64,000 nt of DNA from Histomonas meleagridis 2922-C6/04-290x (GCA_020184695.1 JAANOX010000059.1:75803-139802); one strand, 5' to 3'; positions 21,923 through 64,000 are shown, counted from the stretch's first letter. Numbers and translations are program-made. Notes: generated by a model from the letters alone, not told the origin.

Positions 21923-24900
21923 TTAATCAATATTAGCAGGGACAAATACTAATGAAACATCATCAGTTGAAACAACGAAACGACAAAATTCATTTTCGAA
22001 CTTAATTGATGTAATTTTCGATTCACATTTCCACAAAATCTTTTTCTTCTTCAATGTTACAGCGTTATAAATTACAATTCTATTTTCTTGGTCGACTATT
22101 CCTATATAATCGAATTGTTTATCATTCCAAGCGTTTGCAGCTCCGATGATTTTGATGTCCAATTCAATTTCTCCTATCGGGCGACCGTTAACCGTATAAT
22201 TTTTTATATAAAATTTATCGTTACCTTCAGCAATAACAACAATAGTACCCATTGAATGACAAATTATAATATCAGTTACATGTATATTTTGCTTAAATCC
22301 AAGGTCAATAACTCTTAACAAAGATAATTGTGGTAAGGTACTAATCACTAATGAATTATCTTTTGAACATGTAACAACAATTCCATATTCGACACTTGCT
22401 ACGCAATATATAACAGCGTCATGATGAACCATTAATGTATTAATTAAATTAATTCGTAAGTCTTTTTCTTTATATTTCCATAAGCCAATACAAGAATCTT
22501 CTCCACCACTAATGATATAATTCTCAAATGAACAAATGCATAAAATCGTTGATAAGTGTGGTGTGTTATTACTAACTATAATTGATCGAGTATTCGCATC
22601 GAACACACGTAAAAACAATGAGTTCTCAGCCGCATAAGCAAATGAAGTATCAGATAAATATGATATTAACTTTGGCGTCTTTGGAAACACTACAAGTTTC
22701 TTTGACTTAAAATTAACTTCGAAATATGACGAAGCAGATCGAATGCAAAACAATTTGTTGTTTTGTAGAACAGTATAAACCTTTAAATCATCAAATGAAT
22801 TATTAAGTGTCTTAAATTGAACAACAGGTGCAACAATATTTTGCAAGAAAAAAATTCGCTGTTCTTCAGATTCTTTAATTTTTTGTGATGTCGGATGTGG
22901 AGAAGTAAATAATTGTTGTGGAATTTCTCCAACGGAATTTAAGAATTCGACAACTAAACTTTCTTCAGTATGACTTTTGATTTTGCTCCAAACATTAGGG
23001 AAAACTTGTGGTGGAAATGTATTCATATCTTCTGCTGATGATTGTTTAACGCCCCATATTAAATCAATCCATAGATTTAAGTTATTACGTACGTAATTAC
23101 TTTCTAATGCACAAATATGATTATATATTTGTTCAACTGGTGTTTCCCATTCATTAGAAAGATTGACATTTGAAATAGATACATCTTTATCATCTCTACC
23201 TAAATCAAAATTATTTGAATTCTCTAAAAATTCGCAATCAAAATAAAATTCTGGAATATATTCTTTGATCGATTTACAAATTCGAATTGTCGATTCAACA
23301 TTACCTCTAATAGAAAAGAATAATCTTGATGGGACATCAAATCGACCATCTTGAAGTTTAATATGTAATGAAGTAAAAGGCTCTAAACGTATTAAATATA
23401 ATGCAACCAAAAAAGTGCTGATGTAAAGTGCTGAAAACAGATAATTTCTGCCAGAGCATTTAATTGTTTCATTAAGCGTGCGTAAACCAGTCAAATTTTG
23501 ATACAAAATATTTTTTGATAAATCTCTATAAATTTTCGGATCTTCAAAATCCAAATTTTTAGTATCAAAATCAACTAATAAAATAGGGAAAACAGGATAA
23601 ATTCTTGTATCTAAAAATGATCTTCCTGATAATAAATTTAACCATATTAAATAATCGAAATTACTTAATTGATGATTTCTCCAACGTTGAGTTAATTTAA
23701 GGTTTTCTATTTCAATATTTGGAGGATTTTCTTGGAAAAATATTTTATTAGGTAAAGAAATCTTCTTTAGATTTGATACGAATTTATGTGATTTTTGTTT
23801 CGGAAAAACAAATAAATAACATTTATGATTTGTAGTAAATATTTGTATTGATTGAGGAATTTGATCATTCCAACACCAAAACAAATATTGAACTTTAGTG
23901 TTCTTAATGAAAACACTTTTATTCTCTGCAGAATAATAATAACCTTTTGCGGTGACATAAAACATTCCAATATCATTTTCATTTTGAATTATTAATTGTC
24001 GATGACAATCATCACTCCAAATGATTTGTTGGTTCATTATAGTTAATAATAGTTTATGATCTTTCTCACAATCTTTAAAATATGTTACTGTTGATAATGG
24101 TTCATTAGATTGGATATCTTTAGCTCGTTGCCATCTTAACATTGATTCTTTAGAATGATTATCAAAATGATTATTTTGTGTTTCTATTATTGGCCTAAAA
24201 CGAAAATCAAATTGATTTCCTCGTTTAAAATATTGATGTTTCTTATGTTGATAAAATGGTGAACGATTATATGATAATGATGAATATAAACGTTGCCATT
24301 GTTTACGAAAATCATTTATTTGTGATTTATATTTTAATTTCTTTAATATTTCTGTTATTAATGGTTTAATTACAGGAATTTCGATTTTATATATTTTTAA
24401 TGTTTTATAAAATTCATCATATAATTGATAAGAAATTTCTACATTTTCAGTAACTGTATAAGAATTTATATTTTGTTCTGGTGTTTTATAAGCTATTAAT
24501 GAAAAATATTTTTCATTTTCTTTGTTTTGAGTTAAACCTTCAAAGATTTCTTGAATTATATTAATTATTTCTTGTGAATTAGTTTTATATAAAAATGAAC
24601 AAAGTATAAAAAATGGTAAAATATTTAAATCTTTTTCTTGTATTAAAGTTTTATATAAATTTATTAAATGAAATATTGATTTTGAATCTTGCCATTCATT
24701 ATTATATATATGTGCACCATAAATTGGTTCAAAATTTAATTGTATAAAATAATTAAATTGAAATATATCGAATTCAATTGTAGGAATCATATTTTTTGTA
24801 GGTTCAATAATTGATGAATGATAATTATAAAAATAATATGAACAAATTAATGAAGTAAAATTATTTAAAAGATTAACATCGTTATTAATTTTGTTTATAA

Positions 24901-27900
24901 TATTAATAATTAAATTATTAATTATTGTTCGATCATTACTTTTCTTTAACATTAAAATAATATCAAAACATGATAACATACAATTTAAGAAATTAAAATC
25001 TTCAATTAATATTTCATCAATATAATTAATTAATTTATTCCATTTAAATAAAATTGCAAAACTTAAGAAATATGTAAAAAATGTAGTTTTTGGATATTGT
25101 TTAAATTTTTTAGTCTTAAATGATTTCTTAATATATTTATAAACAAATTTTGAATCTTTTTCATCTAATTTATATGATAATACTATTATTATTGGAATAT
25201 ATTGAATGTTTTTTGTTTGACATAAATATTTTGTTAATTCATGTAATACATCAATTGATAATTGATCAATTTGTTGAACAAAAAATAACAAAAATTGTTC
25301 ATAAAAATCTTCATTTGTTGAAACAAAATTATTAATTAAAATTGATAAATTTTTTGCATTTGAACAATATATAATTTTCGTCTTTAAAATAAATTTTGTT
25401 ATTTCTTCTTTCATATCATGATTATTTACTAAAATTTGTAATATTGAACATATTATTTCATCATTAATATTTTTAGTTTCTATTAATCTAATCAAGAAAA
25501 CAATATTTTTATAAGAATTAATACATTGAAATAATTTAATTAATATAGTTTCAAATGATTCTAATATTTTTTTATTAATTTTTTGTGATAAAATACATTT
25601 ATGAAAGAAATATAATACTTTATCAAAAATGTTTTGTAATTCATCTTTATCAGTAATTTTTATTATAATTTTATGCCAATCATTTAAAATAATTTGAATT
25701 GTTGAAATTTTCGAATTTTTCCATAATTCGGAATGAAATAAAAGACAATAATTATAATCATTTGAAGAATGAAATGTTTCTTTATATTTATATATCATTT
25801 TCCATATTTCACATGTAATTAACTTTTCTTTTTCTATTAAAAAATAACTTATGATTGAAAATCCACCAAATGAATTCATTTGTTCTAAAAAAGTCGTATT
25901 ATTTGATAATACTTTAAATAAAAAATTGATTAAAATTTTAAGATATTTATATTTATCTTCAGTAATAAATTGTATCAATGTTACTATATAAGGAATACCT
26001 TTAGATGCTTCAAAAACTCTTCCAAATTTATTAACAAACTTAAACATTATTCCATGATATTGACTTGATTGATTTTTTACATAATAAAATGTATTATTTT
26101 TTTCTAATTTTGTTGTATATAAGAAAATTAATTTAGGTTCACCTAATAAAAGTGGAAATTTCTTTATTGGAGTTTTATATATTTGTTTTATTAATGTTTT
26201 CGGTACAGGTAATGAATAAAAACTAATTTGTGTAAATAACATATCAGCCATTTTATTATTATCAAAATTATTTTTATATATATAAATATGATCAAATCCT
26301 TCAAACAAAACGTTTGTCTTTAATTTTACTTTAATTTCAAATTTATTATTTAATAATATTCTAATATAATTTGATGAATTATATTCGAAATATAAATTAT
26401 TCCATTGATTAATTTTTATAATAAAATTATGTGTAATTGGATCAAATAAATCATTTGATGATTTAATTTCGATTTTCTCATTATATAAATTTATTAAAAT
26501 ATTTGTTTTATTATTCTCGAAATTTAATAACGTTATAAAATCATCAAAAAAATCAGAAATTAAAAACCATAAAGATAATGCAAAACCATTTGAATAATCT
26601 TTAAATGAAATTCCTGGAAATGTAATATAATCTAAACTTGAAGATAATAATAAAAAAGTATCAACATTATCTTCTTTATAAGATATAATCTTTTCCATAT
26701 ATTTTAACATTTCTGGATAAAATACTTCAATTTGTTGATAATTTTGAGGATTTAAATAACGTAAATATGTAAATAATGTTTGTCGATCACAAATTACCAT
26801 TGATATTCTTGTAAAGATGTTTAATAATAATCTGAAAATCGTTTCATTAGTTGTTGATTCCATTTCTTGAAGTATTAATGAATGGAAATTATAATGATAA
26901 CATTTATAACATTGAATTCTTGATTTTGATGTAATTTCTTTAAGTAATTGTAAGAAATCATTTTTATATTGAGTACTTAAAATAATTTTTGCTATTTCAT
27001 ATGAATATTTAGATTTAATTTGGATGTTATTAGATTGATTATTATTTATTAATTTTAATAAATATTTATATATTGTTTCATTAAATTCAATCGATAAAAT
27101 TCCTTTATTAATATTATCCCATTCGATTTTAATGTTTTCTACTACATTTGGTTCCATAAAATTTTTTAGAAATTTAAGAAATTTTATAGGTTCTAATGTA
27201 TTAGTTTCAAATTTTGTTGTCATTATTAATAAATAATTATGAGCAAAATCAATTTTGAATTCATATGATAAATCTTTTAAGAAATTAGTAAATATTTCGA
27301 TCCAATAATAATATAAATCATTTTGTTCATTCATAGTTTGTAAAAAACTTTTTATTATTAAACTATTAGAAAACAAATCAAAATCATTTTTATAATTTAC
27401 TAATAAAATCGAAAAAATATTTAAAACATTTGAAGAACATTCATTATTTTTTAGACAAGAAATTAATTTCTCAATGAAAAACTCACTTTCGGAAATTTTT
27501 TTTGATAATTCAACTTGATTTTTTAACAAAGTATAAAGAATTTGTAAGAACATATCGAAATTATCTGGAAAAATTCTTAATTTTTCTTCAATACAAAATT
27601 TGAATGAATCAATAAATTGTGAATTATATGTTAAAGAAGATTGATTCATATTAAGAATCATTTCAATTACTAATGATATATTTGTATTAATAAAAAATGA
27701 TATAAATATTTGTTGGATTTGAAATAAAGTTGAATAACTAATAATGATTTTAAATTCTAAAAATCGAATTGGTATTAAAATCGATAACTTTTTGTTGTTT
27801 ATTGATTCAAATATATTTATATTTGGATCAAATATTTCTTTATTAAGAAATAAATCAGGAAGTGTAATTTTTGTATCTTTAAATAGTTTTATAAATTTAT

Positions 27901-28960
27901 TATTTTCAAGTCTTAAAAAATATAAAAAAAGAAATGTAAAAGTTGTTAAGTTAACACTGTATAATTCATCATCATTAGATTTAAATAATGTTTTTAAAAA
28001 AATAAAAATTGAGTTTTTTGATAATAATTGTGTAAGTTCTATAAATTTACCTATGATATGATTAGATTGATTTAAATAAAAACTAATTGATTTAATCTCA
28101 TGAAATAAATCATTTGGATTTGTAGAAACAATTGGAAACTCAATGTTTTGGAGTGGATTTCGTTCAATTATTTCATATATTAATTGTGGAAAATTAGGAA
28201 ATTCACATTTAGTAAGGCGAATAAATTCAACACAAAGTCCAAGTGTTGGAATAATTAAAGAATCATTAATATTATTTGTAATCATTTCTTTAACACAATT
28301 ATAAATCGCTAATAATGAATCATTTACAGAAACTTCTAATTTCTGTAATGTTGTTGCAATGTTTAAAATATATAATATATGAATATTAGCATTGATTTGA
28401 TGTTCAGTATTTGTTTTAGCTTTATGAAAATGAAGTAATATATTGCAAATAGTTAAATGCTCACGAAAAAAATAATCTGGTAAATTCCCAAATGTCAATA
28501 ATAAAGAATGTAACTCTGTAAAAATGGAAGATAAACCTGGATAGCCCGCAGAAATTTTATAAACATTATGAAATAATTTAATTATTATTTCTTGATAATT
28601 AGAATTTAATAGTTTATACGACAAATTTAAGGCTTTTAAAAAAATAATCCAGGTGTCAATGGATGCTTCTAATATGTTTGCATAAACGAATGGAATAAAA
28701 TTTTGAAGTAAAAATATTCCAATTTGTTTTGTATCTTGGGCTCTATCTTCCATTGAGCTAAATTCCCTTTCAATATAGCTAAGAGTAGAAGAATATTTCC
28801 TTAAATCTTCTAATTCGATACCATAACCATTACTTAAAATACTTGTCTCTGGTGAGAATGTTCTATTTGTTACTACGTCCTTTGGAAATGGAAGTTTTGA
28901 AACTTTCTTTTTAAGTATTTTTCTAATTTCTTTATCAAATTCATCGCAATTTCCTTCCAT
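21923..28960 (-). CDS. BEACH-domain protein (ConA-like, PH, BEACH, WD40)
   Basis: 2345 aa; LSNFDYLIWLNLLSGRSF, YPVFP, YLIRLEPFT, FDVPSRLF, IPEFY, WIDLIWG, PQQLF..PHP; C-terminal WD40. Confidence 0.93.
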   Translation of the reverse strand: MEGNCDEFDKEIRKILKKKVSKLPFPKDVVTNRTFSPETSILSNGYGIELEDLRKYSSTLSYIEREFSSMEDRAQDTKQIGIFLLQNFIPFVYANILEASIDTWIIFLKALNLSYKLLNSNYQEIIIKLFHNVYKISAGYPGLSSIFTELHSLLLTFGNLPDYFFREHLTICNILLHFHKAKTNTEHQINANIHILYILNIATTLQKLEVSVNDSLLAIYNCVKEMITNNINDSLIIPTLGLCVEFIRLTKCEFPNFPQLIYEIIERNPLQNIEFPIVSTNPNDLFHEIKSISFYLNQSNHIIGKFIELTQLLSKNSIFIFLKTLFKSNDDELYSVNLTTFTFLFLYFLRLENNKFIKLFKDTKITLPDLFLNKEIFDPNINIFESINNKKLSILIPIRFLEFKIIISYSTLFQIQQIFISFFINTNISLVIEMILNMNQSSLTYNSQFIDSFKFCIEEKLRIFPDNFDMFLQILYTLLKNQVELSKKISESEFFIEKLISCLKNNECSSNVLNIFSILLVNYKNDFDLFSNSLIIKSFLQTMNEQNDLYYYWIEIFTNFLKDLSYEFKIDFAHNYLLIMTTKFETNTLEPIKFLKFLKNFMEPNVVENIKIEWDNINKGILSIEFNETIYKYLLKLINNNQSNNIQIKSKYSYEIAKIILSTQYKNDFLQLLKEITSKSRIQCYKCYHYNFHSLILQEMESTTNETIFRLLLNIFTRISMVICDRQTLFTYLRYLNPQNYQQIEVFYPEMLKYMEKIISYKEDNVDTFLLLSSSLDYITFPGISFKDYSNGFALSLWFLISDFFDDFITLLNFENNKTNILINLYNEKIEIKSSNDLFDPITHNFIIKINQWNNLYFEYNSSNYIRILLNNKFEIKVKLKTNVLFEGFDHIYIYKNNFDNNKMADMLFTQISFYSLPVPKTLIKQIYKTPIKKFPLLLGEPKLIFLYTTKLEKNNTFYYVKNQSSQYHGIMFKFVNKFGRVFEASKGIPYIVTLIQFITEDKYKYLKILINFLFKVLSNNTTFLEQMNSFGGFSIISYFLIEKEKLITCEIWKMIYKYKETFHSSNDYNYCLLFHSELWKNSKISTIQIILNDWHKIIIKITDKDELQNIFDKVLYFFHKCILSQKINKKILESFETILIKLFQCINSYKNIVFLIRLIETKNINDEIICSILQILVNNHDMKEEITKFILKTKIIYCSNAKNLSILINNFVSTNEDFYEQFLLFFVQQIDQLSIDVLHELTKYLCQTKNIQYIPIIIVLSYKLDEKDSKFVYKYIKKSFKTKKFKQYPKTTFFTYFLSFAILFKWNKLINYIDEILIEDFNFLNCMLSCFDIILMLKKSNDRTIINNLIINIINKINNDVNLLNNFTSLICSYYFYNYHSSIIEPTKNMIPTIEFDIFQFNYFIQLNFEPIYGAHIYNNEWQDSKSIFHLINLYKTLIQEKDLNILPFFILCSFLYKTNSQEIINIIQEIFEGLTQNKENEKYFSLIAYKTPEQNINSYTVTENVEISYQLYDEFYKTLKIYKIEIPVIKPLITEILKKLKYKSQINDFRKQWQRLYSSLSYNRSPFYQHKKHQYFKRGNQFDFRFRPIIETQNNHFDNHSKESMLRWQRAKDIQSNEPLSTVTYFKDCEKDHKLLLTIMNQQIIWSDDCHRQLIIQNENDIGMFYVTAKGYYYSAENKSVFIKNTKVQYLFWCWNDQIPQSIQIFTTNHKCYLFVFPKQKSHKFVSNLKKISLPNKIFFQENPPNIEIENLKLTQRWRNHQLSNFDYLIWLNLLSGRSFLDTRIYPVFPILLVDFDTKNLDFEDPKIYRDLSKNILYQNLTGLRTLNETIKCSGRNYLFSALYISTFLVALYLIRLEPFTSLHIKLQDGRFDVPSRLFFSIRGNVESTIRICKSIKEYIPEFYFDCEFLENSNNFDLGRDDKDVSISNVNLSNEWETPVEQIYNHICALESNYVRNNLNLWIDLIWGVKQSSAEDMNTFPPQVFPNVWSKIKSHTEESLVVEFLNSVGEIPQQLFTSPHPTSQKIKESEEQRIFFLQNIVAPVVQFKTLNNSFDDLKVYTVLQNNKLFCIRSASSYFEVNFKSKKLVVFPKTPKLISYLSDTSFAYAAENSLFLRVFDANTRSIIVSNNTPHLSTILCICSFENYIISGGEDSCIGLWKYKEKDLRINLINTLMVHHDAVIYCVASVEYGIVVTCSKDNSLVISTLPQLSLLRVIDLGFKQNIHVTDIIICHSMGTIVVIAEGNDKFYIKNYTVNGRPIGEIELDIKIIGAANAWNDKQFDYIGIVDQENRIVIYNAVTLKKKKILWKCESKITSIKFENEFCRFVVSTDDVSLVFVPANID

Positions 28961-41670: not shown

Positions 41671-42166
41671 TTGACCTGAAATAAAAAAAATTGTACATGT
41701 TTTTTGAATGAAGATAAACTACTGTAAACAAGGATCTAAAAAGAATTGATTTTAATGATAAAATAATGTTTTTTTCAAAATAATTTAAAATAATTGTAAG
41801 TAGCATGTGTTTATATTTTCAATTGAAATAGTCAAAACTTTCTTGTTTATCAAATTAAATGTATACAACATGGTTTTACATATTATGTTGTCCAATAAAA
41901 GCTATTTTAAAGTAAAATTAACAGATATGAAGATAAAAATTGACTTATTCACTACGTTGATATTTTTCTGCCATGATTAAAAATATAAAATGTTGAACCA
42001 AGTATAGGATGAAACTTTAAATACAATGAATTTAAGATGGTGGATTACAAAAGTTGTATAAAAAGTTTTTTCCAGAAAGATTTTTGATAAGAAAATTGAT
42101 ATATTTATATTTCATCGTCCAAAAAAAATTTCTTTCAAATTTGTGGCGGGAGAAAAAAGAATCAAA

Positions 42167-44866
42167 ATGCAGAAAGAATCAAACAGTGGTTTGTCAAGGG
42201 TAGAAAAAGATCAGGTGTTGAAGTTAGCACCAAGGTATCAAAGGAAAATTCATATGTCATTTCATGGATCTATTCAAAACGATAAACTTAAAGATGATAA
42301 CGCAATTATCCTTCTTACAGAACATTTTGTTGTAATTATTATACAAAACCAAAAGGATAGGGTGCTAGAAGTTCTATATTCTATTCATTTCTTTTCAATA
42401 TCTTTTGTTGAAATCATTGATTCGGAAACAATAATGATTGAATCACAATCCTGCGGGAAATTGCATATAAAATCAAAAGATTGTGTTATGTTTGCACGGA
42501 ATCTTTCAAAAAATTATGCAGTTGCTTCGTCATTACTTCCTGATCGTCATCGGTGGAAAGTTGTTACTCGTAAAAAAGGCAAAATAGGACGCCTTGAACC
42601 ATTAATGTCATTTTCTCAACGTTTTCAATTTACTTATAATGCATATTGTTCATTTTATAAAGTCAGATATAATCATCCAATTGTGAAATACATCCATAAT
42701 TTACTTCAAGCCCATAATCCTTTTTTCGATTCCAAACAACTTCCGACACATATTGTTGATTCAAATCTTGGTAGTGCAGCTGATTTTCAACCAGTTGCAT
42801 CATCTCTAAAATATTTTCCATATATTCAATCATTTTCATTGAACCATATTTCCAGTAAAAACATTATCTCTGCTATTTCGTCATTAGTTATCTCAAATGA
42901 AAACATTAAAATCATAAGTCTTGTTGATGTTGGCGCAACAAATGGGTGTAACAAATTATCAAATGCAATTAAACATTCGAAGAAAAACTCAATTTTGTTT
43001 TGGGATCTTAGTGACAATGTAATTGAAGATATTAATGATTTTACTACTTCATTAATTAAATATAAATCAACTTTATATGGATTAAGATTAAACAATGTAC
43101 AAATGAATGAGTTAGCAATAACAAATCTTTTCCAAAGTTTAACAAATAATAAAAATCTTCATGAAATTAAAGAATTAAGTTTAGTTGGTAATAAAATATC
43201 AAAAAATAATTGTCAAAATATAAGGAAATGGATTAAAACATTAAAAAGTAATAAGAAATTCTATTTGCAACATTTATCACTTGGACCTTTATCTAAGCCG
43301 CCACTTATTACTGATTTAATTGATGGATGTAATCAACCATTAACTGTTGTACGTATTGTAGACAGTAAGTTAACAGATGATTCATTATATGATATTTCAA
43401 GATTTCTTTTAAGAACTTCAACATTAAAAGAATTTGATATTTCTGGTTGTTCAATATCAAATAAAGCTTTTAGAAGTGTATTAAAAGCATTACAAGAAAA
43501 TACAAAAATTCAACAACTTTCATTAGGTTTAAATCGATTAAAACTTCATGGAAGTAAAATTAAAACATTAACTGAATTCTTATCTAAAGGACTTTCGAAT
43601 AAAATAGTCGAAATTCATATTGATAATAATGGAATTACTGATAAAGAATTAAATGAATTTATTGTAAATGTTCATGTTATGCATCAATTAAAGAAATTAT
43701 CAATTTCAGGAACTTTTGGTCATAAGAATCCAAATATTATTGAGACAATTCTTGCTTTATTAACATCTAAAACACTTGAAGTATTAACAATTAAAGGTAA
43801 TAGTAAAACATATTTAATGAATCAAGCAATACCAATATTATGTGGTTTGTTTGATAATAAAATAATAAAAAATATTAATTTTAGTCATAACAAAATTGGT
43901 GAAATTGGAGTAAAAACTGCTTCAAATTTAATAAGAGCAAATAATAATATTCAATCATTAGAAATCGATGGAAGTGGTGTAACAAATATCGAAACAATTT
44001 ATGATTATCTAGAAGCTTGTGCTCAAAGTAAATCATTATTAGAAGCTAAAGTTCCTAAAATTGATTTAGAAAATATCGTTTTAAATAAGACATTAAATGA
44101 AAAAAGTGATATATTAAATAAAATTGCTCAATTACAAGATAAAGTTAATCAAAACTTATTTAGAAATAGAAATAAATTTGGTATTCAATCAAGTTTATCA
44201 TTACAACAGAATCCAATAATTGATGAAATCATTGAATTGGCTGTCGAACAAAACAAGAAATTAATGGGAAATATGAACGTAAATGATTTAAATGATTTAT
44301 CAAAGTTATACGGTATTCCTCTTCCAACACAAACATTTTCAGATATTACCAATAGAGGAAGTGATTTTAATAAAGTAACAATGAATTCATTAAATAGCAT
44401 AGAATCAAATCGATTTAATTTCCAATCTGTTGATAATATTAAAAGTAAAAATAGAACAAAGAAAAATGATAAAAAATTGGAAGAAAATTATGACCCAGAA
44501 TTAAAACATACAAAGTTATCGGATGATGACAATAAGAAAAATAAAAATGTTAAAAAGAATAAAGAAAAGGAATCAGAAACAAGTGATGAAGAAACAGAAA
44601 CAGAAACAGAATTAGATGAAGAAAATACAGAAGAAAATGAAACTGATTCAGGTGAAGCAGAATCAAATGACCAAAACGAAACTGAGTCCAACAATGAGGA
44701 TACTGATGAAAGCACTGAAAATGATAGTGAAAGTGATACTGAAGTAAGTGATAAAGAGTCAAGTGAACATGAACAATATTCAGAAGATAGCGAAGCAGAC
44801 ACAAGCGATCAGGAAACAGAGCAAAGTTCGGATGAAACAGAGTCTGAGACAAGTGAATCTGAATAG
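42167..44866 (+). CDS. CARMIL/LRRC16-like LRR protein with acidic C-terminal tail
   Basis: PH-like N-terminus, FSQRFQFTYNAYCSFY linker, RI-type LRRs, E/S/D/T-rich tail; start moved to ATG 42167. Confidence 0.8.
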   Translation: MQKESNSGLSRVEKDQVLKLAPRYQRKIHMSFHGSIQNDKLKDDNAIILLTEHFVVIIIQNQKDRVLEVLYSIHFFSISFVEIIDSETIMIESQSCGKLHIKSKDCVMFARNLSKNYAVASSLLPDRHRWKVVTRKKGKIGRLEPLMSFSQRFQFTYNAYCSFYKVRYNHPIVKYIHNLLQAHNPFFDSKQLPTHIVDSNLGSAADFQPVASSLKYFPYIQSFSLNHISSKNIISAISSLVISNENIKIISLVDVGATNGCNKLSNAIKHSKKNSILFWDLSDNVIEDINDFTTSLIKYKSTLYGLRLNNVQMNELAITNLFQSLTNNKNLHEIKELSLVGNKISKNNCQNIRKWIKTLKSNKKFYLQHLSLGPLSKPPLITDLIDGCNQPLTVVRIVDSKLTDDSLYDISRFLLRTSTLKEFDISGCSISNKAFRSVLKALQENTKIQQLSLGLNRLKLHGSKIKTLTEFLSKGLSNKIVEIHIDNNGITDKELNEFIVNVHVMHQLKKLSISGTFGHKNPNIIETILALLTSKTLEVLTIKGNSKTYLMNQAIPILCGLFDNKIIKNINFSHNKIGEIGVKTASNLIRANNNIQSLEIDGSGVTNIETIYDYLEACAQSKSLLEAKVPKIDLENIVLNKTLNEKSDILNKIAQLQDKVNQNLFRNRNKFGIQSSLSLQQNPIIDEIIELAVEQNKKLMGNMNVNDLNDLSKLYGIPLPTQTFSDITNRGSDFNKVTMNSLNSIESNRFNFQSVDNIKSKNRTKKNDKKLEENYDPELKHTKLSDDDNKKNKNVKKNKEKESETSDEETETETELDEENTEENETDSGEAESNDQNETESNNEDTDESTENDSESDTEVSDKESSEHEQYSEDSEADTSDQETEQSSDETESETSESE

Positions 44867-45236
44867 AGTTAAAGCCCTTAAACAGATTGTAAAACAAAAC
44901 TTTAATTACTTTATTAATTCAAAAAAATTAAAGAAAGGGTTAATTCAGATGTCCCCAGGGAACAGTCACCGGGGACATGTCCCCGGGTGTTCAATTTTTT
45001 AACAGTCATTGTGAAAATTTATGGATTTCAGCAGTGGATTTTTTTTTGATGTTGGAGAAAACCGAATAAATTGAGTTTATCGGTAATACAAAAAAAGTTA
45101 AAAAGACGATTAAATTGCTTTTTTAAAAACACACTGATACCCTACCCATGAGGTTGAACAAAAGATACTTCCAATGTTTTATTTATTAAAAAATCGTCTA
45201 AAAATGTTTATTAGCACCACCCAATGGTCACTGCCT

Positions 45237-45419
45237 CTAATTGTGAATGTGTTTGATTCTGTGAATGTGAGCGTTGGAACATAAAAATCTTAATCTGTTT
45301 GAATTTTTCGAATCTTTTAAATAAATACTATATCCATTTCTGGTTGCTAACTCTTTGAGGTAATTGCAAAGCTCCGATCCACATGTAAATGAAAAAGGAG
45401 AAAGGTTTTCGAAGTCCAT
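45237..45419 (-). pseudogene. Possible Mutator transposase N-terminal (FAR1/WRKY-GCM1-like) remnant running into the left TIR
   Basis: FSFTCGSELCNYLKELATRNGYSIYLK...RLRFLCS pattern; frame continues into the TIR. Confidence 0.4.
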
Positions 45420-45643
45420 TAAAAATTGAAAAAGCCAGCGGTGAAGACGATTAAACTCATGCCATGAATGTATATTGTGTGTTTCAATTCTATGTCGTCG
45501 TTTTTGAATTCAATGTTATTACATTCATATGTGATTTGGATATATAGAAATTTTCATTGTATCAACAGTTATTGATCGTATAATAATTTTGCATCAAATT
45601 TTTTCCCAAAACATTTGTCAAAAAATGACTTTTTCGTTTCAGA

Positions 45644-45944
45644 ATGAATCACGTTGAAGAAAGCGTTGAAGCAATTGGGGAACACGTATATGCTTCACGT
45701 ACTTCGTTGAAAAATATCACAATTTCGAGTGCGGTCACATCGATTGGGAATTATGCATTTGAATCATGTTGGCATTGGAGACATTTTCTTTTGGAGAAAA
45801 AGTGAAAATATATGAGGATTGTGCATTTTATTCATGTTCATCATTGAAAAACATCACAATTCCAAGTAATGCATTATTTTTGGGACGAAACATCGCCAAC
45901 AGTGCCTTTTCTAAAGTACCAACATCATCTATTAGACGTTGGTA
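45644..45944 (+). pseudogene. Captured BspA/TpLRR fragment inside the MULE
   Basis: VEAIGEHVYASRTSLKNITISSAVTSIGNYAFESC, then after a frameshift LETFSFGEKVKIYEDCAFYSCSSLKNITIPSN. Confidence 0.85.
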
Positions 45945-46680
45945 ACATATCAAAGCGAGACATTTGGAGATTTGTAAACATCCAAAGGAACGACAATTGA
46001 AGGATGACTCCTGATGCCAACGCTCACATTCACAGAATCAAACACATTCACAATTAGAGGCAGTGACCATTGGGTGGTGCTAATAAACATTTTTAGACGA
46101 TTTTTTAATAAATAAAACATTGGAAGTATCTTTTGTTCAACCTCATGGGTAGGGTATCAGTGTGTTTTTTTTAAAAGCAATTTAATCGTCTTTTTAACTT
46201 TTTGTATTACCGATAAACTCAATTTATTCGGTTTTCTCCAACATCAAAAAAAAATCCACTGCTGAAATCCATAAATTTTCACAATGACTGTTAAAAAATT
46301 GAACACCCGGGGACATGTCCCCGGTGACTGTTCCCTGGGGACATCTGAATTAACCCTTAAAGAAATATGTAATGTGTTGACTTGTTTATGTGTTTTGTTG
46401 GTGATTTTTGTTGATCAGATGGAAGGGATTCGATTAAGAATTAAGTGAATTAAAAGTAACGTCAGAAAATAACTTTGTTATAATGGTAACTAGCAATCAA
46501 AATGACAGAAACTAATGGATCATTTAAATTTATTTTTTCGTTTTTCTTTGATGAATCTAGAGTGGCAGCAATAAGGGGGTTGACTCGGTAGAAACCCCGT
46601 TGACCCATGTTATCTTTTGAATATCGAAAAATTTTAAACAATTTTTTGTCGAGATTTTATAAAAAAAAATAATATTTTAT

Positions 46681-48063
46681 TCATAACTTTGTTCTCTTTC
46701 TATTTTTTGAATAGACTAAAAAATTCGGTGAATTTCTGAAGTGCCGTACTCGATCAGCATACCTCTCATCAACCTTGATGTAGAGGATATTGTCATTTCG
46801 AGAATATTCTGTTAGAAGTCCTCCTCTCCAAAAGGCATTGACAACGCATCTTGTAACAGTAGACATTATATATGAATCATGAATCCTTATAACTTTTTTT
46901 GTTTGATAAGAAAGTGTTGAATCAAGATATATGTTGGCCATTTTTCCTTTTTGATTCGCAAAAACACAGATGTCAAGAAATTGCAATTGAGTGCTCGAAT
47001 GCGAAAGAATATATCTAAGATATACATTGTTCTCGGATAAATAGTCATCAATACCATCGGCTCCATGGCACGAACACCCATCAAGGATTAGAATTGCTGG
47101 ACCATCATATCCAGTTATTTGTCGTCTTATTTGCAAATCTGTCAAGTAACAATCATCCGACCATTCCTTAAATATCCTTGCATTGATATACCCAGTATCG
47201 CTTTTGGGATATGTTATTTTATCTGTTGTGTATCCCAGCTGATATAATTCATAATCAACTGTTTCTCTTCGAATAACAATTAGTGGTTTGATAACTGAAC
47301 TATCTGCAACTATTGCAGCAATCATTGTGTGGTGATCCACATTAACATCTTGCCCAATTGGAATTTCATTTCCAACATATTCCATCGGTACAACACAAGA
47401 AACAGCGCGATCAAGTTCGCGTCCACCAAATCCTACTTCATCAACATTTGCAACAAATGATGCTGGTATTGGAAATTCAAATGTTTCATGAAATTGCTTG
47501 AACCATTCATCTATTTGGCCTTCATCGCAGTGGACACGATCTGCTTCCATTCTTGTCCCCTTGACTAACCTGAATAACTGCGAGTTAGATATCATATGCC
47601 TTACAGATTCTGGAGTTAGAATCATTTCGAAAGCATTAAAAACGAAATTAACTATTCTTTGTATTGTGCATGGGGTCTTCTGGTTATATTGTGAAGAAAT
47701 GTAACTACTTAATCTTCCCATTTGTTGATCATTAAGTGAAGATGGACGCCCAATAATTCCAGGTTCTCCATTCCACTTGCAATAAGAACTTATTACATTG
47801 GAAATCCTTTGTTTAGATACACCAAAAATCTTCCCAATGTCTGACATCGAAAGTTTGAGTTCTCTTTTATTTCCATAATAATAGAGGTTATATATTTGCT
47901 CACGCTTTGAGGATGCATTAGAGTTCCATTGTAATATTTCATATGCAATCTTTGCTTTGTCCGGACCCACTGCCCCAAGGTCTAATTGATCAAGAGTACA
48001 CGGCTTCTCATAAATGCCTCTGCTGTGTGGAACCTGAAAGTATTCTTCGGGTTTCTCCAGCAT
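46681..48063 (-). mobile_element. pogo/Fot1-like DDE_1 transposase ORF (DD35D), uninterrupted
   Basis: HTH-like N-terminus, NVDEVG, LILDGCSCH, QFLD with 35 residues between D2 and D3; 13-bp inverted repeat AAACCCCGTTGAC at 46592-46604 and 48180-48192. Confidence 0.9.
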
Positions 48064-61514: not shown

Positions 61515-62132
61515 ATGTCTACTGATACAAAAGACCAAAATAAAAACACGCAACATTCAACTATAGAAGTAAAAAATCGCGAGAATAATGAGTTACCCAA
61601 TAATGAAGTCGAACGTATCAACCAATATTTCAAACTTGTTACGACAATTATATTATTTATAGAATTTGCATTAGCGATTGGCTCTCTTATAACGGTAGAT
61701 TCATTTAACAAATGTAATTTATTTTTTGATATTGTAGGAGGCACATACTTTTTATTTTGCTCAATTCTTGATCATGTTTATATTTCGGAGGCAGTATTGT
61801 TCTTTTTAAATGTCCTACTTTATGTTCCTTCGATTTCATTTATCATCAGCTCGATAATTTTGTTTATTTCCGTTATTGTACCAATTGGAACGATAACTGA
61901 AATATTTGTAGTTACCCAATACTGCGTAGTACCAGAGTTAATTTTTAGATTCTTTATGAATCTTCCAAATGATACTTCATTTGCAGTGAAACACCTAATA
62001 TTTCTGGCTGCACATTATATTCTTCAAGAGAGAAGAATCTGGCAAAAATATCACCAACAAATCAAAAAATACAAAGATAATCTAAGCAAAATATTGAAAA
62101 TAATTACTCCTCTAAAGCAAACCAAAAAATAA
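61515..62132 (+). CDS. Multi-pass membrane protein of unknown function
   Basis: 3-4 hydrophobic segments after a hydrophilic N-terminus. Confidence 0.6.
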   Translation: MSTDTKDQNKNTQHSTIEVKNRENNELPNNEVERINQYFKLVTTIILFIEFALAIGSLITVDSFNKCNLFFDIVGGTYFLFCSILDHVYISEAVLFFLNVLLYVPSISFIISSIILFISVIVPIGTITEIFVVTQYCVVPELIFRFFMNLPNDTSFAVKHLIFLAAHYILQERRIWQKYHQQIKKYKDNLSKILKIITPLKQTKK

Positions 62133-62311
62133 ACAAGTTCATCATTGATTTTTATATAATTAAAATACTTTTTTTTGATTTAATCCAAAATGAGATTTCG
62201 TTGATCCAAGTATAATTCAATTAATAAATATATGTGTATATATAACATACTGGTTCCAATTTATTGTGATCTGATATACTCACCCCTCCCCCCATACCAC
62301 ACCACAGTATC

Positions 62312-64000
62312 CACAAGTAACACCCACATACACAGGTAACACCTACACACACAAGTAACACCTACACACACAAGTAACACCTACACACACAAGTAACACC
62401 TACACACACAAGTAACACCTACACACACAAGTAACACCTACACACACAAGTAACACCTACACACACAAGTAACACCTACACACACAAGTAACACCTACAC
62501 ACACAAGTAACACCTACACACACAAGTACCACCTACACACACAAGTAACACCTACACACACAAGTAACACCTACACACACAAGTAACACCTACACACACA
62601 CGTACCACCTACACACACAAGTAACACCTACACACACAAGTACCACCTACACACACAAGTAACACCTACACACACAAGTAACACCTACACACACAAGTAC
62701 CACCTACACACACAAGTAACACCTACACACACAAGTAACACCTACACACACAAGTACCACCTACACACACAAGTAACACCTACACACACAAGTACCACCT
62801 ACACACACAAGTAACACCTACACACACAAGTAACACCTACACACACAAGTACCACCTACACACACAAGTAACACCTACACACACAAGTACCACCTACACA
62901 CACAAGTAACACCTACACACACAAGTAACACCTACACACACAAGTACCACCTACACACACAAGTAACACCTACACACACAAGTACCACCTACACACACAA
63001 GTAACACCTACACACACAAGTAACACCTACACACACAAGTAACACCTACACACACAAGTAACACCTACACACACAAGTACCACCTACACACACAAGTACC
63101 ACACACACACAAGTACCACACACACAAGCACCACACACACAAGCACCACACACACACAAGTACCACCTACACACACAAGTAACACCTACACACACAAGTA
63201 CCACACACACAAGTACCACACACACAAGTAACACCTACACACACAAGTAACACCTACACACACAAGTACCACCTACACACACAAGTAACACCTACACACA
63301 CAAGTACCACCTACACACACAAGTACCACCTACACACACAAGTAACACCTACACACACAAGTACCACCTACACACACAAGTACCACCTACACACACAAGT
63401 ACCACACACACACAAGTACCACACACACAAGTACCACCACACACACACAGTACCACCTACACACACAAGTAACACCTACACACACAAGTACCACCTACAC
63501 ACACAAGTACCACCTACACACACAAGTACCACCTACACACACAAGTACCACACACACACACAAGTACCACCTACACACACAAGTACCACCTACACACACA
63601 AGTACCACCTACACACACAAGTACCACCTACACACACAAGTACCACCTACACACACAAGTACCACCTACACACACAAGTACCACCTACACACACAAGTAC
63701 CACCTACACACACAAGTACCACCTACACACACAAGTACCACCTACACACACAAGTACCACCTACACACACAAGTACCACCTACACACACAAGTACCACCT
63801 ACACACACAAGTACCACCTACACACACAAGTACCACCTACACACACAAGTACCACCTACACACACAAGTACCACACACACAAGTACCACACACACAAGTA
63901 CCACCTACACACACAAGTACCACCTACACACACAAGTACCACCTACACACACAAGTACCACCTACACACACAAGTACCACCTACACACACAAGTACCACC
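62312..64000. repeat. 19-bp CA-rich minisatellite AAGTA(A/C)CACCTACACACAC, roughly 90 units, truncated by the window end
   Basis: Direct reading; two main variants plus shorter 15-17 bp units. Confidence 0.98.

Follow-up and report, generated by a model that had tools for sequence, protein, structure and literature searches.

In plants, the capture of host-gene fragments by Mutator-like elements (MULEs) is a textbook case of how genes are shuffled; elsewhere it has hardly been documented. The stretch of 64,000 nucleotides analyzed here, hereafter called the window, comes from the parabasalid poultry parasite Histomonas meleagridis 2922-C6/04-290x (GCA_020184695.1, JAANOX010000059.1:75803-139802), and it raises the question of how a piece of a BspA-type gene came to lie between two long inverted repeats at positions 44937-46356. 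The 1420 bp so bounded form a defective Mutator-type element, which is in all likelihood a non-autonomous, Pack-MULE-like derivative of a Mutator-like transposon with long terminal inverted repeats (TIRs), carrying a fragment of a BspA-type host gene. A Pack-MULE had been proposed in the original prediction, made from the sequence alone; this reading now stands on firmer ground than TIRs and a target-site duplication (TSD) alone could provide, because the element keeps a remnant of a MULE transposase, is collinear with a relative lacking the cargo, and carries BspA-type sequence whose homologues occur outside any MULE context. The JAANOX assembly is one of the two H. meleagridis assemblies of Palmieri et al. 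(2021), which represent a virulent/attenuated strain pair and were built from Nanopore and Illumina reads (PMC8529796).

The boundaries of the element were read directly: the left end is GGGTTAATTCAG and the right end is its reverse complement. The two arms (44937-45277 and 46017-46356, 341 and 340 nt) are inverted repeats of 98.5% identity over 342 columns, with perfect blocks of 160 and 153 nt within the alignment, and their mismatches are confined to two runs, A7/A5 and T6A5/T4A8. Because the assembly is Nanopore-based (PMC8529796), these differences in run length could be homopolymer errors. Exactly two occurrences of the 51-nt terminus were counted in the window, compared with zero expected in shuffled sequences. 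A perfect 9-bp TSD, TTAAAGAAA, is present on both sides (44928-44936 and 46357-46365), and the chance of a match at nine of nine positions was estimated from the AT-rich base composition as about 1e-5. The predicted placement, the 341/340-bp arms, the perfect 9-bp TSD and the restriction of the arm differences to homopolymers were all confirmed. The insertion is intergenic and begins 70 nt 3' of the stop codon of an open reading frame (ORF) of 907 aa.

Comparisons with related elements are given in transposase orientation (elT, the reverse complement of 44937-46356, so that the window position equals 46357 minus the elT position). The nearest autonomous relative, L007, is a contig of 2583 nt from the ENA metagenome assembly ERZ28614869, and it encodes the transposase P0034. 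Two separate segments of the element match it: elT 1-218 corresponds to L007 55-278 (80% identity over 227 columns, E 4e-52), and elT 745-1096, which spans the 5' untranslated region (UTR) and the first codons of the transposase gene, corresponds to L007 276-649 (70% identity, E 1e-54). In L007 these segments abut at 278/277 (...CATGAGGTT followed directly by TGGGG...); in the element, elT 218 and 745 are separated by 526 nt, and GTT is found at both junctions. Because the L007 segments abut at this point, window 45613-46138 counts as inserted when the autonomous type is taken as the reference; past codon ~48 the body of the transposase is deleted. L007 and its product thus share with the element the terminal 218 nt, the collinear 5' UTR and the first 53 residues (74% identical), and differ from it in having a full transposase of 622 aa with MULE and SWIM domains, in lacking the BspA cargo, in coming from another organism and in a 3' end that lies off the contig. 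The parts of the element that belong to this MULE backbone, together with the insertion, are listed below.

44928-44936, no strand: left copy of the TSD, TTAAAGAAA, read directly and the same as 46357-46365.
44937-45155, minus strand: TIR conserved in the family, 3' end in transposase orientation, about 218 nt; 78.6% identity to the inverted 5' end of L007; GGGTT at the tip and repeated GGGGAC/GTCCCC palindromic motifs.
45237-45419, minus strand: ORF of 60 aa, of which codons 1 to about 48 are the N-terminus of a MULE transposase (FAR1/WRKY-GCM1-like DNA-binding region), from phmmer and alignment.
45420-45612, minus strand: 5' untranslated/promoter region of the MULE transposase gene, collinear with L007 276-490 directly upstream of the start codon of P0034.
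45613-46138, plus strand: cargo of 526 nt, inserted relative to the autonomous relative, from the L007 comparison.
46139-46356, minus strand: TIR conserved in the family, 5' end in transposase orientation, 218 nt; 80% identity to L007 55-278.
46357-46365, no strand: right copy of the TSD, TTAAAGAAA, read directly.

Conservation of the termini was not limited to L007. The outer 218 nt of the element are conserved with five related loci. The terminal 60 nt, with their repeated GGGGAC/GTCCCC palindromes, recur in L003 (3' end) and in L004, L005 and L007 (5' ends). When JGI metagenome contigs were scanned for a TIR motif of 24 nt, 0 matches were returned. The related loci L002-L007 are ENA and Logan contigs of the sample series ONAT22-1 and BRZ, and their source is probably a parabasalid. 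They form a MULE family with transposases of 622-648 aa composed of a FAR1-like N-terminus, a MULE domain and a SWIM domain; L003 and L004 are decayed deletion derivatives, and the TIRs measure 57 nt in L006 and 30 nt in L002.

Assignment of the backbone to the MULE superfamily was based on the 60-aa ORF and its relatives. In an exhaustive phmmer search of 1.8 billion representative proteins, residues 1-54 of the ORF aligned with residues 1-54 of P0005 (631 aa, E 1.1e-8), and several short N-terminal fragments were also retrieved. Identity of the remnant to the N-termini of P0034, P0033 and P0005 was 74% (53 aa), 59% and 52%, respectively. P0005 contains a Pfam MULE domain above the cut-off; P0034 (622 aa) and P0033 (640 aa) contain both MULE and SWIM, the scores in P0034 being 28.9 bits for the MULE DDE domain (PF10551, cut-off 27.6) and 22 bits for SWIM (cut-off 19.6); and P0035 gave a weak FAR1 match at its N-terminus. 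Pfam analysis of the 60-aa ORF itself gave no FAR1 or MULE match, and the Atlas features returned for it (FAR1, AFT, ZSWIM3_N and DBD_Tnp_Mut, the MuDR DNA-binding domain) serve as leads only. No similarity to transposase was detected past about 48 codons in any frame of the element. The earlier statement that the element has no intact transposase is therefore correct insofar as no functional transposase gene is present, but it overlooked the N-terminal remnant kept in the interior.

The cargo contains about 400 nt derived from a BspA-type gene, comprising approximately 3.5 TpLRR units, the end of the domain of leucine-rich repeats (LRR) and the start of a Thr/Ser-rich stalk. Two plus-strand ORF pieces scored above the cut-off of 27.7 for Pfam LRR_5 ('BspA type leucine rich repeat'), with 35.8 bits for 45644-45805 and 30.1 bits for 45766-45945. 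An ORF running across the boundary between arm and interior was used as query and yielded three short metagenomic proteins and the contigs L008-L011, which are collinear with elT 305-703 at 67-81% identity, the collinearity crossing the same boundary. The translations of these contigs are BspA-type, with TpLRR units, the end of the LRR domain and a Thr/Ser-rich stalk, to which L011 adds a hydrophobic segment and a basic tail, and none of the four resembles any of TIR, 5' UTR and transposase. When a 241-aa open stretch of L010 was searched against the element by tblastn, its residues 27-159 matched three collinear segments with a combined E of 6e-17. These segments and the other parts of the cargo and inner arms are as follows.

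45653-46052, plus strand: BspA-type gene fragment, from Pfam LRR_5, tblastn and nucleotide collinearity with L008-L011.
45653-45769, plus strand: first segment matching L010, frame 1.
45775-45942, plus strand: second segment matching L010, frame 3.
45936-46052, plus strand: third segment matching L010, frame 2, 71% identity, two in-frame stops.
46053-46138, no strand: about 88 nt of cargo that separate the BspA stalk piece from the family TIR, without a match to L002-L011.
45156-45277, minus strand: inner left arm, an inverted duplicate of cargo 46017-46138 and part of the 98.5% inverted repeat.

Altogether the BspA homology amounts to about 133 codons' worth of sequence, distributed over three frames and truncated at both ends. 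The fragment has decayed through frame changes near 45762-45775 and 45930-45940 and through two in-frame stops in the last piece, and the continuous ORF of TpLRR units, stalk, transmembrane segment and tail that characterizes an intact BspA-like gene was not found in it. The original prediction of about three repeats with one frameshift at 45644-45944 was right about the nature of the repeats, which Pfam confirmed, and understated the rest: the stretch occupies 45653-46052, changes frame twice, holds two stops and reaches 36 nt into the right arm. No BspA gene is present in the 64-kb window, and a homologue search with a 59-aa BspA piece gave none among candidates whose length was 0.55-1.75 times that of the query. 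Most probably the fragment is inert.

The extension of the BspA homology into the right arm bears on the structure of both arms. Because this homology runs on contiguously for 36 nt into the right arm and is continuous there with the remaining cargo, the inner 122 nt of that arm (46017-46138) belong to the cargo. The corresponding part of the left arm (45156-45277) consists of about 36 nt of BspA stalk-coding sequence and about 88 nt of the adjoining cargo and has no counterpart at the 5' end of L007. These sequence comparisons show it to be cargo duplicated in inverted form and joined to transposase codon ~48; the 60-aa ORF accordingly owes its codons 49-60 and its stop to duplicated BspA stalk sequence read out of frame. 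The arms appear to be 340 nt long because 122 nt of cargo were duplicated in inverted orientation at the 3' terminus; the TIR proper of the family is about 218 nt. A different origin of the inner arm was considered from residues 48-54 of the ORF (SNAHIHR, compared with SNHQIHK), namely that transposase sequence runs into the arm and that the arm interior was copied from the 3' to the 5' side. It was rejected because the same bases match the BspA stalk of L008/L009 with 97% identity over 32 nt and are contiguous with the right-side cargo, and the likeness of the two heptapeptides is ascribed to short junction homology, of a few bases at most, or to chance.

Mu deletion derivatives and Pack-MULEs are commonly explained by template switching. 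A comparable history may be proposed for this element from the anatomy of its junctions, in which template switches during repair or replication synthesis would have taken place at very short homologies (GTT at two junctions and about CAA at the third). One switch would have led into a BspA gene; the other, between the two TIRs, would have placed a copy of 122 nt of the cargo at the opposite end, with loss of the transposase after codon ~48. The product would be immobile by itself and would depend in trans on an autonomous member of the family, whose transposase would bind to the conserved motifs at the termini, with a 9-bp staggered cut producing the TTAAAGAAA duplication. Copying of the element would then have followed the capture.

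Support for copying came from contigs of public runs. Logan contigs from two DNA samples, one RNA library and one chicken gut metagenome were placed on 44100-47200. Besides an interior contig that matches 45362-45584 exactly at single-copy depth, two variant contigs were found at single-copy depth, 45362-45629 with 18 differences and 45588-45754 with 11 differences, and they cross the junction between cargo and 5' UTR at 45612/45613. A contig of the RNA library covers 45449-46198 with 29 differences; by way of the arm segment of 160 identical nt it is joined to 44100-45094, which includes the exact left flank, in an orientation opposite to that of the window (joint 45094/46198). This joint is probably a path of the assembly graph through the repeat, proving neither inversion nor transcription, though the interior could also flip between the arms. 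In the chicken gut metagenome, a TIR-like sequence (46009-46336, 10 differences) stands beside a different flank, and interior-like sequence is also present; no empty site was found, and this metagenome, having no coverage of the left flank at all, is uninformative on that point. Taken as contigs, these sequences suggest that one or more additional copies exist in which the cargo junctions are shared and the divergence is 4-7%. Because another copy shares the cargo junctions, the element appears to have been copied after the capture. A few more TIR-bearing elements probably exist beyond the second copy, and the family perhaps comprises 2-5 elements; the summed depth of the arms and TIR is 7-18 times that of the flank, a summed k-mer depth that is not a copy number.

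The near-identity of the arms had been taken as a sign of recent insertion, a conclusion that the data do not uphold. The inner 122 nt of the arms are an internal duplication, the second copy has diverged by 4-7%, and both DNA samples from the strain pair contain the insertion, whose left junction is also crossed by an RNA-library contig. Arm identity can equally stem from gene conversion between the arms. A further proposal, that such elements act as an engine for the expansion or shuffling of surface antigens, fared no better, as the cargo is truncated, twice frame-shifted and stop-containing, the family is small and no feedback on BspA genes is shown.

A role beyond that of inert cargo may be imagined, in which the 340-bp hairpin or the BspA piece is transcribed, by read-through or from within, and feeds small-RNA silencing of the MULE or of BspA genes, or in which, as in the proposed engine, the fragment serves as a recombination donor diversifying BspA genes. 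Among the observations that could favor it, an RNA-library contig runs from the upstream gene exactly into the left arm for 158 nt, the interior variant occurs in RNA-library contigs, and the RNA runs contain 10-21% of the exact words of the interior. Presence in an RNA library does not show transcription, however; the fragment is truncated with two frame changes and stops, and the family is small. We consider such a role improbable. Likewise improbable is the broader proposition that the long-TIR MULE family of Histomonas and its relatives repeatedly captures and copies pieces of host genes, BspA fragments included, and that its hairpin elements matter as BspA recombination donors or as sources of hairpin RNA acting on transposon or parent genes.

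If the BspA-like segment were native to the MULE family, as a second gene or an ancient fusion, no host gene would have been captured. That at least one other copy has the same segment agrees with this possibility, and the autonomous element of H. meleagridis itself was not among the loci retrieved. The homologous point of L007, however, lacks the segment, and the flanking sequences abut there. The distance from the terminus to the start codon is 253-436 nt in L004, L005, L006 and L007 compared with 937 nt in the element, and a segment of this size could not be accommodated within the much shorter distances of L004, L005 and L006. BspA-type homologues with LRR, stalk and transmembrane-like tail exist in L008-L011 without MULE sequence. 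A native origin is thus very unlikely.

No transposon insertion would be needed at all if a BspA pseudogene had been enclosed by a local inverted duplication, or if long-read assembly had produced the structure as an artefact. The near-identical arms, with homopolymer-only differences of the kind that Nanopore errors produce, would fit, and no single short-read contig spans the whole element. Against it stand the perfect 9-bp TSD, termini homologous to five independent MULE loci, and the transposase remnant and 5' UTR inside the element. Both junctions between flank and arm were crossed without differences by contigs of both DNA samples (44100-44964 and 46329-46606), which have single-copy depth (~620 and ~520) and end 28 nt into the arms, where a k-mer graph is expected to break at a repeat; the interior is likewise at single-copy depth in the two samples, and TIR-like pieces occur beside a different flank in the chicken gut metagenome. 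The suspicion of an inverted-duplication artefact, which the original prediction had named as a check on itself, was not borne out, and an origin without insertion is already largely refuted. As for another cut-and-paste superfamily with 8-9-bp duplications (hAT, Merlin or P), TSD length alone does not discriminate, but the ORF remnant and the collinear relative encode a transposase with the Pfam MULE domain plus SWIM, and this assignment is refuted by the data in hand.

Several points weigh against the reading of the element as a Pack-MULE-like derivative with captured BspA sequence. L007 comes from another organism and shares 70-80% nucleotide identity with the element, so that the Histomonas ancestor could have differed from it. 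Neither an autonomous partner in H. meleagridis nor the donor BspA gene was retrieved in searches that covered the 64-kb window and the protein and metagenome collections, and the family search with the transposase returned metagenome and Logan proteins only, with none from the NCBI annotation of Histomonas. About 88 nt of the cargo (46053-46138) found no match among L002-L011. The second copy and the copy number were deduced from short contigs and from k-mer depths that had been summed. The variant interior is linked to the TIR by a contig of the RNA library, possibly a chimera that the graph formed across the repeat, and the template-switch mechanism was deduced from the junction anatomy.

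Maize Mu deletion derivatives and rearranged MuDR copies are explained by interrupted gap repair with template switching at short homologies, and Mu killer is an inverted duplication that includes the TIR and the start of the transposase gene. In the Histomonas element, unlike Mu killer, the inverted duplication spans the TIR and cargo and not the transposase start, and no silencing role is shown. The plant Pack-MULEs, as the work of Jiang et al. (2004) is cited in PMC6446971, resemble the element in being non-autonomous, in long TIRs, a 9-bp TSD and the lack of a working transposase, and in carrying an internal host-gene fragment; like most plant cargos, that of the element resembles a pseudogene, and it was probably copied after the capture. 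The element differs from them in its occurrence in a parabasalid protist; in the retention of the transposase 5' UTR and ~48 codons, so that its descent from an autonomous element is directly visible; in the partial inverted duplication of the cargo, by which the arms grew from ~218 to 340 nt; and in a very small family compared with thousands of copies in plants.

Within the parabasalids, Mutator-like elements are known from Trichomonas vaginalis as TvMULE1-4 and the Repbase MULE-Tv elements (PMC2725143; PMC6446971). They have a single transposase ORF of ~460-630 aa and a TSD of 9-11 bp or longer, and FAR1-type motifs are reported for the TvMULE group; TvMULE TIRs are 20-38 bp, with 100 bp and 31 bp given for MULE-Tv, and the absence of long TIRs was emphasized by the authors (PMC2725143; PMC6446971). 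Compared by description only, these elements differ from the Histomonas element, whose TIR is ~218 nt, in their short TIRs and in that no cargo-bearing derivatives have been described. Pack-MULEs are known in plants, with similar claims for fungi and, in a 2026 preprint, for myxozoans. The preprint, on Sphaerospora molnari (bioRxiv 10.64898/2026.02.11.705288), likewise claims MULE-carried fragments of expanded parasite gene families, in an animal lineage and with detection by TIR scan and BLASTX; the present case offers evidence at the level of junctions against an autonomous relative. No report of a parabasalid Pack-MULE was found in the literature, of which our coverage was incomplete, and gene-fragment capture by a Mutator-like element is apparently unreported for this group.

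In this parabasalid parasite the capture can be followed down to its junctions, with the autonomous-type backbone, the cargo, the type of donor gene and the short junction homologies all visible, and the case defines a long-TIR MULE family distinct from the short-TIR TvMULEs of Trichomonas. In the published Histomonas annotation, repeats were identified by RepeatMasker with a Trichomonas library only and Mutator elements are unmentioned (PMC8529796); because no other repeat library was used, the long-TIR family was probably missed. As the evidence stands, the BspA fragment is dead cargo, and the element is of practical use mainly for annotating repeats. If several different cargos were confirmed genome-wide, there would be a concrete route to ask whether transposons help to reshape the expanded surface-protein families of trichomonads.

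Other features of the window were also recorded. To the left of the element, the 907-aa ORF (42143-44866, plus strand) gave weak LRR matches and has a long acidic tail rich in Ser, Glu and Asp; the public gene call for it comprises its last 200 residues only (L001 9198-9800). An exact look-up of a neighboring protein of 899 aa gave no recorded match. To the right, at a distance of 325 bp, lies an intact ORF of 460 aa (46681-48063, minus strand) with a Pfam DDE_1 transposase domain (pogo/Tc5-like), which is recorded for contig JAANOX010000059.1. A second variant of this ORF was seen in contigs of the DNA runs at approximately single-copy depth and a ~91% identical version in the chicken gut metagenome, and from its sequence it looks like another, possibly active, family of DNA transposons. 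At 62001-64000 the composition changes abruptly (GC 0.43, GC skew -0.72, AT skew +0.54), which suggests a strand-biased simple or C-rich repeat. A 2345-aa ORF occupies 21923-28960 on the minus strand, and the 4 kb at 24001-28000 within it, with only 17.7% GC, are an extremely AT-rich coding region, probably of low complexity.

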